Positions 1,583 to 60,417 of a DNA stretch of 64,000 bases are shown piece by piece (positions within the stretch are counted from its first letter, which is position 1; each line of letters begins with the position of its first letter). The position numbers and the translations under genes are program-made. Source of the DNA: Octopus sinensis (Eukaryota); assembly GCF_006345805.1 (NCBI RefSeq), contig NC_043008.1, positions 24,552,001-24,616,000 of the forward strand, read 5' to 3'. Below the pieces are notes generated by a model that did not search any database, had not been told where the DNA came from, and saw only the letters and a list, made by a program, of their open reading frames with translations.

Positions 1583-2175
1583 GGTGGATTCCCTTTGCGG
1601 ATCTATTTCTAGCGTTAGAGAGACTACATGTGGTCTCTCTCTTATTACTTGTATTAATAATTTTTACTGTATCACAGTTTTTTTACGCTAGGCCACTTGG
1701 TGTTTTAAATTGATGTTATTAATTAATATTCAATTTTTTTCACCCTTATTGTGAGTTTAATTATAAATTAATATGTTCTCAAACCGGCAGTAAATTACTG
1801 GGGTAGTATTTACATCCGGTATTTCCAACGCGCCAGGAGTGAGGATATTTGAATGCAACTGCAAATGTAATCGGCTGTGCCGTTCGCCTTTGCTCGGCTT
1901 CGTATGGATTTTGGTGTTCGATCCAGCAAATTATATTTTTGATATACTCTACTGAGGATTCGAAAATGATTATGTAAGTAAAATTAAACAATCTATTAAC
2001 AATGAAACAATTGTATAGAGTTAATCTATTTTTTCGTTATTTTTGATTTGTCCTGCCCGCTTACATTCTTGGTGAGTTGAATTAATGCTTGAGAACAATT
2101 CTTTAGTGGTAGATTCCCTTTGCGGATCTATTTCTAGCGTTAGAGTGACCACATGTGGTCTCTCTCTTATTATTG
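1583..2175 (+). mobile_element. Internally deleted PLE-like element with direct terminal repeats (family B)
   Basis: GATTCCCTTTGCGGATCTATTTCTAGCGTTAGAG..GTGGTCTCTCTCTTATTA occurs at ~1587-1646 and ~2112-2171, flanking a degenerate reading frame. Both outer ends abut (TA)n. Confidence 0.55.
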
Positions 2176-2399
2176 TATATACATACATACATATATATAT
2201 ATATATATATATATATGTGTGTGTGTGTGTGTGTGTGTGGTGTGTGTGTGTGTGTGTGTTGTGTGTGTGTGTGTGTGTGCGTGTGTGTGTATAGTGTATA
2301 GTATAGGTTAGTTAAAACATGTTTGCAATAAATGTCGTGTGGTGGAAATAAACGCAATTACCAAACTTTGATTCATAAAACCATTAATTATTTCGCTCG

Positions 2400-3103
2400 T
2401 TTGCATTTAAATTTGTACATATGTACCCAGAAATTTTCAACAACTGCACACCAGAAGAAATGGAAAAACGAGTAATTTTATCTCCTTAAAATTCTGACTG
2501 TCTTGCAATAAATGAAAAAGTTCTTAATATCATAGTAGACGTAGTTAAAACGTACTTAAGCGCAGATCCAATGTCCTGCAATAATGAAGAGGAAGTTCAG
2601 AACTATCCATTTGACTTCATACACTCACTCACACCATCCGTTATGCCTCCGCATCACCTCAACTTAAAACTTGTAATGTTGCTAAGAAATCTTTCGAAGG
2701 CGCAAAGATTTCGCGAACATTGTGTAGAGGCATCATTGGTAACAGGCTCCAACAGAGGTCGTACAGTTCTAATTCCCAGAATTAAACTTAGCCCTAGTGA
2801 TGCAAATATTCCATTTACACTAAACAGACTTCAGTTTCCACTTCGACTTGCATATTCAATGACAATTAATAAGGCTCAAGGGCAAACCTTTGAAAAAGTT
2901 GGAATACATTTGCCCAACCGGTATTTTCTCATAGCCAATTATATGTCGCCTTCTCAAGAGCACGAGCTTTGAACAATATCACAGTAAGAGTTATGACACT
3001 CAATTGGGATAACAGACAAGGCCAAAAACGTGGTGTGTCATAAACACAAAATATTGTCTACATACACACAATATACTGTGACGAAGACTAGCGCACCAGC
3101 TAG
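2400..3103 (+). mobile_element. Helitron RepHel 3' fragment (PIF1-like helicase C-terminus)
   Basis: ORF 2571-2972: YPFDFIHSLTPSVMPPHHLNLK..VMLLRNL..RLQFPLRLAYSMTINKAQGQTFEKVGI; the other frame gives FSHSQLYVAFSR. Imperfect hairpin GTGaCG..CGCAC followed by CTAG at 3100-3103. Confidence 0.9.
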
Positions 3104-3559
3104 CATCACCATCACACCAGCCGCTCCTTCATTACACATCCACATCACACCTTTAAGATCTATCTCTTTATTACCAATAAGGGGCTATACAAAGAACAGA
3201 ACAAATACAAAACAGACAAACATAAACTCGGGGAACTTAAAATTATTAAAAGAAGATGAAATAAGAAGAGAAAAATTACATCTTTAAGATCGGGGGACCA
3301 GTTAGGGGCCCACTGGATCTCTCTCGGCATACCAGCAAACTACAAAATCGCCCTAGCCAGCATCACTACTACCTCCAAGCCCGTCATAAGTAGTTCTTCC
3401 TATGACCTTAAACGATACTAGCACAATCACACACATACATAAACAGCCACAACCACATACACATAAATGCACACACATAGTGCTATCATTGAACACACAC
3501 ACACACACATACACACACAACACACACACAGACCTACGCGCATGCACATACCCACACAT

Positions 3560-3830
3560 ACCTCCTTCTCTTGCACTCTCCTGTCTTTGGAAGAACTTTT
3601 CCTTCACCCATTCGGCTCCGGTAATTTCAATATGTGACCAAGTGTGTATCGTTGGCGATTTTCTTTCTCCGTCTTCCCTTCTTTAGACTTTTTCTATATT
3701 TCTGGTGAAGGGCGCCGCTTGAAACGTGAAATCCTCTTTATTTTCTATCCTTTTCTGAGCGTCCAATAGCACTGTACTTATTCCACCTCCTCGCGTTGCT
3801 GTTTTTTCTTGCTTGTTGATGTTTGGATTG
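3560..3830 (+). mobile_element. PLE-type terminal repeat with degenerate minimal hammerhead (3698-3732)
   Basis: attt-CTGGTGA-agggc/gctt-GAAA-cgt-G-aaat: stem I and GAAA are intact, but the core (A6>G) and cleavage site (GUG) are mutated. The tail (ttccac.tcctcgcgttg..) recurs at ~59645-59710. Confidence 0.55.
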
Positions 3831-58500: not shown

Positions 58501-59784
58501 AATAATACCAGCAGTTAGAAGGTAAATAAGGAAGGGAAAGAAAAGTAGTACAATTTTAAAGTACATTGTATTATCGTAAAGATGTAAATTTCTTCCAGTT
58601 TTTGTTTCTTTTCTACAGTTATTCGCATTAAAAAATACTATTAGTTTAGTTTCTTGTCATATACTGTGAAAAGTTCAACTGTTATACGTCGAAATAATGT
58701 GGTATGTTTAGATATTTTCGTTTGTCAATTTGTTTCTAAAAACGCGCATAATACTTGTTATAGCTTTCCCCGAATTCCCACATGCGCTTATCTAGTCAAC
58801 TATAAAACCACTCATTTATTGATTCCCTCTTCTGTTTAATTATCTAGCCATCCATCTCTCCTTCTATCTATCCATTCATCCATGCCAGCTTACTTTTGTT
58901 TCTCTTTCGAAATCATGATAAATGTCTGGTTTCTGCTTTTCGTATGTACCAAACGTATTATGAATATTGTTGAATATATGTTATATAGATGCATATTGTA
59001 TATTATGCACCCACTATATTTATGTCTTTATATGTATATGTATGTACCTTTGTATGTATATTTGTATGCAGATGCCTGTGCATAAATATGAAACGTACTA
59101 TGTACAGTGTAGTTTCATTGAAACACTGGAAAGCATTGCAATTCTATACGTATTATATGTGGACAATTTTAGTTTTATTTTTTTCTTTACATATCTTTCG
59201 TACACCATAAGAGCTGGAAGTTATGTTTTATTGCTTTTTGTTTACGAGATATGAAGAAGACAAAAATTTGTACGTAATTCATATAGTATAAAACTTTCTG
59301 GTTACGGGATAATAACCGTGAACGGTGCAATCAAAACTTATATTTATTAAATTGAAACTTATCTTTACAGATTATGTGATTTAACTCAAGTAGTAAACAA
59401 TTCATTTATTAACTTACCAGCTTTCACATTTAAAATTTTGCTCATTGTTTATCTCGTCCACCAAATTGTGTTAGTGCGCATGCACGATAATGTGCATTGC
59501 CTATAAATTGGGGTTAATATTTTTCTATATCTATGTATACATTTGTCGTACTACGTTTTTATTTCATGCACTTTTTAATAATTTTTACATTTGCCTGAAT
59601 TTCTATTATTTTATGATTTAAAAGTTTATATATATATATATAATACTATATTTGTTCCACGTCCTCGCGTTGTTGTGTTTTTTTTGTGTTTTATTGTTTG
59701 GATTAACTTTATATATATATATATATATATATATATATATATATATATATATATATATATATATATTACTACTACTACTACTAC

Positions 59785-60082
59785 TACGTGACCGACCAGA
59801 CCATCAGATGTTGTTACACATCGCTAGTCACAATACGTTCGCATTGTTTTAGCCTTCGAATGACGCCACTCCGCTGGCTAAGCGAGCAGGCCAATAGAAG
59901 AAAGAGTGAGAGAAAGAGTGGTGAAAGAGTACAGCAGGGATCACCACTTCCTGCCGGAGCATCGTGGAGCTTTAAGCTGTTTTCGCTCAATAAACACTCA
60001 CAACGCCCGTTATGGGAATCGAAACCGCGATCTTACGACCGCGAGTCCGCTGCCCCTAACCACTGGGCCATTGCGCCTCCAC
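59785..60082 (-). mobile_element. Full-length tRNA(Arg)-derived SINE with (TAG)n tail
   Basis: gtggaggcgcaatggcccagtggttaggggcagcggactcgcggtcgtaagatcgcggtttcgattccc..ggtcggtcacg(tag)n. Confidence 0.88.
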
Positions 60083-60181
60083 ATACACACACACACACAC
60101 ACACACCACACACACACACACAACACACACACACACACACACACACACACACACATATATATATATATATATATATATATA

Positions 60182-60417
60182 TTAATCAATATAAGGGTAG
60201 CAAAAAAATTCAAGAAAAATTCAAGAAAAATTTTCTGCAACCAGCGGTCAGATTATATAATATATTCAACAATAGTATTAAGGAATGATCCTGACAGGTC
60301 GTTCAACTCACTTGAAAAGAGCAGCTAAACTCAAACCGCAAAAATAGTAGTATTTCTGAAAACTAAAGGAGAAATAAAAACATTTATCCCCTATATAAAA
60401 ACATTCATCCCCTATAT
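60182..60417. repeat. Family C element, non-inverted copy in (TA)n
   Basis: Homologous to 17386-17590; ends with a ~20-bp duplication aaaaacattYatcccctatat. Confidence 0.85.

Follow-up and report, generated by a model that had tools for sequence, protein, structure and literature searches.

Insertions of Penelope-like elements (PLEs) are known for 5'-truncation, for partial tandems called pseudo-LTRs (after long terminal repeats), often for a 5'-truncated copy placed in inverted orientation on the 5' side, and for a tail at one end only; two groups, Naiad and Hydra, prefer (TA)n, and Naiad remnants were reported in Octopus (PMC8557442). In Poseidon, a PLE of the lizard Anolis carolinensis, copying by the reverse transcriptase (RT) begins inside the RNA at either of two positions beside a stem-loop, about 90 nt past the hammerhead cut; the interval between these positions is the tail, and in AT-rich DNA both strands are cleaved and extended by the same enzyme (Frangieh et al. 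2024, PMC11167929). Recently, animal retrozymes were argued by Li et al. to be non-autonomous PLE derivatives (bioRxiv 10.64898/2026.07.22.740005). Here, a stretch of 64,000 nucleotides from Octopus sinensis (NCBI RefSeq assembly GCF_006345805.1, contig NC_043008.1, positions 24,552,001 to 24,616,000 of the forward strand, read 5' to 3'; hereafter the window) is considered, in which the short repeat families A, B and C, together with family F just outside it, carry a common RNA structure, a three-way junction. In our opinion, with a probability of about 0.6, these families are small non-coding retroelements copied by a PLE reverse transcriptase-endonuclease (RT-EN), with the junction as its recognition and start signal, and represent octopus counterparts of the animal retrozymes.

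An earlier examination of the letters of the window (the sequence-only reading) had drawn attention to a GTT-hairpin-CTTA motif in three repeat families. The motif is indeed present at all five places reported, two in family B, one in A and two in C, and four arm copies absent from that account were added (Table 1). The stem sequences are unrelated between families and nevertheless paired, as had been said, at 8–10 of 10 positions in each family. Flanks common to the families, namely TCTAGC upstream and GACCNNTGG and ACCCTTA downstream, in the tail, were likewise all found again, and families A and B are 66% identical over ~175 nt. The window is AT-rich (GC ~0.33), with abundant TA and TG microsatellites, and a loose GTT-hairpin-CTTA pattern is not rare in it: ~4.9 chance matches are expected per window when G-T pairs are permitted. 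Unlike these, the genuine copies occupy homologous positions within elements with alignable flanks. The window also contains a 125-bp inverted repeat (8503–8627 and 9453–9577, 97.6% identical, ~825 bp apart), inside which a chance GTT...CTTA occurs with no real stem.

The hairpin of this motif (P2) is one arm of a three-way junction, which the earlier examination had missed. The order along the GTT strand is P1a, P2, CTTA with a TA-rich linker, the short hairpin P3, a U-rich linker and P1b, where P1 is a 7-bp long-range helix formed by the 7 nt preceding GTT and the 7 nt immediately preceding the conserved CCNNTGG. P1 reads TCTAGCA/TGCTAGA in family A, TCTAGCG/CGCTAGG in family B and TCAAGTG/CACTTGA in copy 1 of family C (C1), and P3 reads AATC/GATT, ACTGT/ACAGT and TAGTC/GACTA, respectively. 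The junction strands are (U)GUU, CUUA with an A/U-rich stretch of 24–27 nt, and a U-rich stretch of 7–13 nt; loops and most junction bases vary, while CTTA, GTT and the A/T or U runs are kept.

The helices are maintained by covariation. MAFFT with RNAalifold misaligned them when applied to the raw sequences, and the alignment was made by hand and fitted to the structure, which biases pair counts toward it. In this hand alignment, 89.6% of the pairing cells are paired, versus 28–42% with the partners slid, and both sides changed in 17 of 22 pairs, a level reached by none of 500 shuffles. P1, the register of which is fixed by the conserved flanks, has both sides changed at three of its seven positions when A, B and C are aligned, and family F, aligned separately by the covariance model described below, alters further positions of this helix. 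The chance of finding any 7-bp partner at most 90 nt away is 0.02–0.15 per family. Single-sequence minimum-energy folds comprise P1, P2 and P3 for families A, B and F (z from −2.65 in A to −3.77 in B); that of C1 favours a different pairing partner. It was supposed earlier that the wobbles of family C favour the TAAG..AAC strand, which did not hold, as the GTT strand forms six G-U pairs, whereas two cells, C-A on this strand, would become G-U pairs on the opposite one. The other argument of that time, the analogy with hammerhead orientation in favour of the GTT strand, agrees both with these wobbles and with the polarity of the hammerheads given below. The general idea of a structured signal beside a fixed terminus, maintained by covariation, is supported.

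A covariance model (R1) built from families A, B and C independently found the fourth family, F, at 3574–3679 of locus L001 with 31 bits. This locus consists of the left end of the window together with the 7.3 kb preceding it (a window position is obtained by subtracting 7358 from the L001 position). The helices of family F are new (P1, TCGGCAT/ATGCTGG; P3, ACCT/AGGT), and its P2 is followed by CTTA, TTTTG and an A/T tract; the whole element extends from ~3398 to 3714 of L001 and is flanked by two (TA)n tracts. With filters off, R1 gave no further match to the module elsewhere in the window.

Hammerheads were sought using a strict type-I descriptor, which gave three matches in 208 kb versus 0.175 expected. 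Two of them, 17753–17843(−) and 21867–21957(+), belong to the inverted terminal copies of a 4.3-kb element (PLE-1, discussed below), and the third is a canonical type-I hammerhead of family F (L001 3434–3494(+)), located on the strand of the junction, ~85 nt upstream of it. A relaxed descriptor revealed a relic in family B, the architecture of which matches the hammerhead of the neighbouring PLE; because helix II pairs poorly, this copy is probably inactive. The same relaxed search added decayed hammerheads at 11826–11876(−) and 17282–17332(+), which occupy the two outer ends of a large inverted duplication. Hence, the earlier remark that other families carry a hammerhead proved correct for PLE-1 and for this duplication.

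The sequence-only reading had also stated that CUGANGA and GAAA are absent. This is true of the motif itself, where the hammerhead core (CUGANGA, GAAA and UH around three helices) occurs on neither strand, but not of family B, which has CTGAGGA...GAAAC[AATT]GTA ~120 nt upstream. Nor does the motif stand in for a hammerhead, as was thought then: families B and F have both on one strand, with the hammerhead 85–120 nt upstream of the junction module, and the 5' ends of family A are within 1 nt of the cut. In fact, the centre of the family A palindrome (between 4067 and 4068) falls within 1 nt of the aligned family B cut, which suggests that both arms of family A stop at the 5' end of the hammerhead-cut RNA. 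The copies of families A and C probably lack a hammerhead because they start at or past the cut site.

The ends of the copies are fixed at two sites. Site 1 is located in the linker 5–10 nt past CTTA (9–14 nt past the stem), near the ~10–12 nt past CTTA given previously for the short copies, and is used by A1-left, A2-left, C1-left and B2. Site 2, 93–135 nt beyond site 1 and 10–14 nt past CTACCCTTA, is used by A1, A2, B1, C1 and C2. In all, four copies terminate at site 1 and six at site 2. The bases preceding both sites are alike (CCTTAATTGG versus CCTTAATTTTT), and a pure A/T tract, 10–18 nt long, comes after either site within the unit. Every inverted pair has one end at site 1 and the other at site 2, so that the tail is found at one end only.

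Every insertion is situated in a (TA)n microsatellite, a regularity missed before. Seven of the ten ends are at most 6 nt from a run of (TA)≥4, a category making up 4.8% of the window, and the other three are in imperfect TA repeats. Three empty sites confirm this. One corresponds to the second copy of family A (A2), which is inserted in one arm of the large inverted duplication; the other arm contains plain (TA)n at 13451–13456. Two others correspond to family B, where the older host repeat is uninterrupted in the paralogues L002 and L003, the insert lying within its (TA)n(TG)n tract. A TTAA duplication of the piggyBac type was considered and rejected, since the empty site puts CCAA and TTTTTAAAT inside the insert.

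On the GTT strand, the unit includes the hammerhead cut site, a segment X (~90–125 nt), the three-way junction, GACCNNTGG with an AT-rich hairpin, and CTACCCTTA with 10–14 nt after it; full units additionally end with a middle region and then the hammerhead. Inverted plus direct pairs are formed in A and C1 and a partial tandem in B, while F and C2 are direct copies, either single or 5'-truncated. In A1 (3903–4326) and A2, an inverted X-hairpin-CTTAATTGG is joined to a direct X-hairpin-CTTAATTGG-tail, and the plan of C1 is the same; a self-comparison gave a palindrome at 3890–4245 of A1 with 99.4% identity. Family B begins with a 5'-truncated start (31 nt of X) and the complete junction; the tail, the middle region and the hammerhead relic come next, and a second X with P1a and P2 leads to the end at site 1; its direct repeat (1583–1654 and 2108–2178, 72 bp) shows 94% identity.

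Table 1. Features of families A, B and C and of the neighbouring PLE-1 in the window (hairpin positions run from GTT to CTTA).
Feature	Position	Strand	Details
Family B insertion	1583–2178	+	~1.14 units head-to-tail; 596 bp, one insert according to the paralogous empty sites L002 and L003
Family B three-way junction	1608–1692	+	P1a 1608–1614, GTT-P2-CTTA 1614–1644, TA-rich linker, P3 1666–1678, P1b 1686–1692; minimum-energy fold
Family B hammerhead relic	1946–2021	+	Relaxed descriptor search; ACTCTA-CTGAGGA-(degenerate helix II)-GAAA-C[AATT]G-TA/TAGAGT; predicted cut between 2015 and 2016
Family B second copy (B2), P1a-P2-CTTATTATTG	2133–2178	+	P2 2139–2169; terminates at start site 1 against (TA)n
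Family A copy 1 (A1), inverted arm	3903–4067	−	Reverse complement of X-P1a-P2-CTTAATTGG; outer end at site 1; P2 3908–3940(−), added copy
Family A copy 1 (A1), direct unit	4068–4326	+	X begins at the hammerhead-cut position; P1a 4187–4193, P2 4195–4227, P3 4249–4260, P1b 4271–4277; tail ends with CTACCCTTAATTTTTAAAT (site 2)
Family A copy 2 (A2)	15340–15742	+	Architecture as in A1; arm P2 15345–15376(−) and P2 15613–15645(+), both added copies; P1b 15688–15694
Family C copy 1 (C1)	17382–17704	−	Inverted arm 17589–17704 (decayed P2 17650–17688(+), added copy) and direct unit; (TA)n on both sides
C1 direct unit		−	P1a 17531–17537, P2 17501–17529, P3 17467–17480, P1b 17447–17453, tail end 17382–17401
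Family C copy 2 (C2)	60181–60418	−	Direct copy without inverted arm; P2 60279–60307; P3 and P1b deleted; tail end 60181–60201
PLE-1, degenerate Penelope-like element	17718–21991	−	Comparator outside families A–C; RT, CxCX5C linker, GIY-YIG, 228-bp inverted terminal copy

All structural features described here for families A, B, C and F can be mapped onto the picture known for PLEs and retrozymes. These families show a sense-strand hammerhead in the unit (canonical in F, a relic in B), a partial tandem or an inverted copy, a tail and a (TA)n target, as expected of PLE derivatives, and we infer that they were copied by a PLE enzyme, which probably came from a (TA)n-targeting clade such as Hydra. 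The unit RNA would be transcribed from the GTT strand and may be cut by the hammerhead. The RT-EN would bind the junction and nick (TA)n, and cDNA synthesis would then be initiated inside the RNA at site 1 or site 2, the stretch between them corresponding to the PLE tail; the A/U tract past each site could pair with the nicked (TA)n end. Priming from both target strands would result in the inverted plus direct pairs of A and C1, and an uncleaved multimer used as a template would account for the partial tandem of family B and the 5' part of F. Of two interpretations offered by the sequence-only reading, a recognition element for an RT or endonuclease is the one that fits these data. It may tentatively be supposed, further, that the junction is a portable start signal for the PLE RT and that (TA)n targeting is at least partly set by the RNA, with the A/U tract pairing with the nicked end that primes cDNA.

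One of the closest counterparts is Poseidon, where a structured RNA is also present ~90–165 nt downstream of the hammerhead cut, two alternative cDNA starts are separated by the tail, and the target is AT-rich; the inverted copies in octopus may be explained, as in Poseidon, by the use of both target strands. The stem-loop of Poseidon is AC-rich, whereas a three-way junction with an A/T-rich linker is found here; the tail is 30–40 nt there and 93–135 nt here, the octopus target is strictly (TA)n, and the octopus elements are non-coding and known from sequence. With animal non-LTR retrozymes (Li, Clavereau and Pollet 2026; Cervera and de la Pena) the families have in common short non-coding units, the type-I hammerhead, the head-to-tail arrangement (family B) and a unit end at the hammerhead cut (family A). 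Retrozymes form long tandem arrays, whereas mostly dispersed single or inverted insertions in (TA)n are present here, most copies being without a hammerhead, and no conserved junction has been described at the 3' boundary of retrozymes. The Hydra and Naiad elements (Craig et al. 2021, PMC8557442) show the same (TA)n bias, pseudo-LTRs, inverted 5'-truncated copy and one-end tail; unlike families A–C and F, they are autonomous and 3–4 kb long, and no common 3' module with these families was demonstrated. Finally, MRC1 of Chlamydomonas, a non-autonomous Chlamys element (PMC8557442), is similar as a non-coding PLE derivative with pseudo-LTRs, head-to-tail insertions and microsatellite targets, and differs in belonging to another kingdom, in its (CA)n or C-run targets, and in having no hammerhead and no described junction.

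A PLE is situated next to one of the insertions. PLE-1 adjoins the same (TA)n as C1 and includes an RT fragment (20884–21195; RVT_1, E = 0.025), a linker VCKCRIKSKC (19795–19583) fitting CxCX5C and a GIY-YIG domain (19640–19290, E = 0.002). Each of its terminal copies contains a type-I hammerhead with a 60-nt helix II and a 1-bp helix III, and its 3' boundary is 37 nt past the hammerhead cut. The domain order, hammerheads, 228-bp inverted terminal copy and (TA)n at the 3' end make PLE-1 a coherent Hydra-type element; hammerheads and a CxCX5C linker are known in Hydra elements as well. The 3' end of PLE-1 differs from the junction module. The large inverted duplication mentioned above (11805–14007 and 14784–17352) has a microsatellite-rich interior, and its hammerheads would cut 27 nt from the arm ends; it resembles one more inverted pair of PLE-type copies.

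Several points weigh against the assignment of these families to PLE-copied retroelements. The search for autonomous elements ending in the motif, which had been proposed earlier as a check, gave none in the 208 kb sampled, a limit of sampling and no proof of absence: no autonomous PLE (RT plus GIY-YIG) with this 3' module was found, and R1 had no match near any RT. R1 also found no further copies in another 124 kb, taken from octopus and related loci; the six additional loci sampled (three of O. sinensis, two of O. bimaculoides and one ENA contig) are all without the module. When spurious reading frames of A, B and C were joined into a chimera and used as a protein query for further genomic copies, no matches were obtained, and a search for octopus PLE proteins with a GIY-YIG fragment from L002 returned one uninformative 524-bp contig. 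The RT and GIY-YIG matches of PLE-1 are below the curated cut-offs of Pfam. Rfam calls none of the hammerheads, so that these remain candidates of a descriptor search with no curated model behind them; at the same time, hammerheads of the PLE type, with their long inserts in helix II, are missed by the Rfam models. Helix II of the family B hammerhead is degenerate, and no hammerhead is demonstrable for families A or C. The covariation comes from approximately three independent lineages, as A and B among the four families are related, and from a hand-made alignment. Boundaries inside (TA)n are ambiguous by a few bases and cannot be placed to the nucleotide. In addition, the tail is longer than in the PLEs described so far, as noted above for Poseidon.

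Other explanations, those invoking Helitrons, their HINE relatives, a LINE or cut-and-paste transposons, each fail on several features. The families could be short interspersed nuclear element (SINE)-like partners of a microsatellite-targeting long interspersed nuclear element (LINE), for example of the Dong/R4 clade, with the junction as the structure recognised by the LINE RT in the 3' untranslated region. A microsatellite target, 5'-truncated copies (B1, C2) and a structured 3' region would be expected in this case, and Dong-R4 activity was reported in Octopus vulgaris (PMC13282606). LINE-mediated copies, however, share a single 3' end rather than two, inverted duplicates of the same 3' segment and partial tandems are hallmarks of PLEs (PMC8557442), and hammerheads are associated with PLEs and not with LINEs; neither the window nor the sampled loci showed a LINE with such a tail. 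Such an origin is unlikely.

Still less probable, in our view, is an origin as non-autonomous rolling-circle transposons (Helitron or Helentron with its HINE derivatives), in which the hairpin would be a single-stranded DNA signal for the Rep nuclease ~10 nt from the 3' end. Like the 3' terminal hairpin of Helitrons, which is variable in sequence and placed ~10 nt from the element end in an A/T context, the octopus hairpin is 9–14 nt from one end; the ends are asymmetric, TC occurs at the other end in B and C, Helitron-type Pif1 fragments are nearby, and HINEs have palindromic subterminal repeats (PMC4067079). The Helitron hairpin, for its part, is a DNA signal accompanied by a CTRR end and 5' TC, with no long-range helix, hammerhead or dual ends. 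Judged by the features of HLE1 (TC at the 5' end, CTRR at the 3' end with a hairpin ~11 nt away from it, and an insertion point flanked by A and T), the octopus elements agree in hairpin distance and A/T context; their ends do not agree, being TTGG, ATTG or TTGA rather than CTRR, with TC absent in A. For HLE2, i.e., Helentrons and HINEs, terminal inverted repeats of 12–16 bp, a stem-loop past the right repeat and a TT target were described (PMC4067079, PMC11417382); here the target is (TA)n, and the inverted segments are 70–165 nt long and direct in family B. The two alternative ends, the partial tandem, the same-strand hammerheads and the centre of family A at the cut would be left unexplained, and the Pif1 fragment belongs to the older repeat hosting family B. 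The Helentron/HINE interpretation was our initial lead and was dropped in view of the empty sites, the direct repeat of family B, the dual ends and the hammerheads.

The host repeat itself is a multi-copy sequence (1100–1582 and 2290–3390 of the window, L002 9250–10930, L003 9250–10830), which harbours family B in its microsatellite. Its components are a unit with GAATTACAGCTACAACTCGAGAC at its end, a tract of (TA)n(TG)n and a C-terminal fragment of a Pif1/Helitron helicase. The best matches of this fragment (2403–2990) are in Octopus, where it is 75% identical to 'PIF1-like' proteins. A near-complete Helitron reading frame (Helitron_like_N, PIF1, Pif1_2B) was found in the ENA contig L007 at 6361–10825; R1 had no junction match there.

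The other interpretation of the sequence-only reading, a non-hammerhead self-cleaving RNA, would make the three-way junction a new ribozyme cutting in the linker past CTTA and so producing the ends of short copies. A covarying three-helix junction that adjoins a fixed terminus in retrozyme-type elements, with short copies ending at a constant linker position, speaks for this. A search of families A, B, C and F against Rfam release 15 (4227 families) on both strands at E ≤ 10 gave no ribozyme family match, and with gathering and permissive thresholds the whole window and four sub-regions yielded solely microsatellite or palindrome 'miRNA' noise. Loops and most junction bases are variable, the unit already has a same-strand hammerhead, a second cut 165 nt later would split it, and the fixed ends of Poseidon arise from internal RT starts rather than from cleavage (PMC11167929). 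We regard such a ribozyme as very improbable. Least credible of all are cut-and-paste miniature inverted-repeat transposable elements of the Tc1/mariner type with TA target duplication, where the palindrome would be a dimeric transposase site: the TA context, the long inverted repeats of A and C and the fully palindromic stem of family B are in their favour, but the terminal bases of the two ends mismatch (CCAATTAAGG versus TTTAAAAATTAAGG), the repeats of family B are direct, P1 and P3 covary, which is unexpected for a double-stranded binding site, and hammerheads are present.

Several other repeats of the window deserve mention. Family E (25514–26067) consists of inverted and direct repeats in (TA)n; it terminates in TATTTCTAGC-AGCAAtactgTTGCT-GACTAGTGTG, with a hairpin 10 nt from the end and no GTT/CTTA. 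It may be a distant relative of the module; R1 gave no match to it, and its apparent LTS motif TAGGAGTAGC turned out to be part of an inverted repeat, so that E is not alignable to the module. Family D (22463–22808 and 41790–41852) has ~75-bp inverted ends containing CTACCCTTAAG; its hairpin, GTTAGCCAC..GTGGC, is separated by 9 nt from a (TA)n tract. A 578-bp tandem repeat of three units, 91–99% identical (46733–48549, 52302–52856 and 43334–43536), follows downstream of reading frames that are LINE-like and contain zf-RVT; Rfam gave no match at it, to a hammerhead or to any other family.

What is known of the choice of internal start by a PLE RT comes from one in vitro study, carried out on a single lizard element. 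The octopus families give a concrete hypothesis of microsatellite targeting: if it is true, the choice of target would be guided by RNA and not solely by the zinc-finger linker of the endonuclease, as has been proposed so far. They offer a small RNA module backed by covariation, with two mapped putative start sites and an RNA 5' end that would be defined by the hammerhead cut, and this module lends itself to clear mutants, both stem-disrupting and compensatory. Hundreds of 'unclassified SINE' families in octopus genomes may prove to be PLE derivatives.

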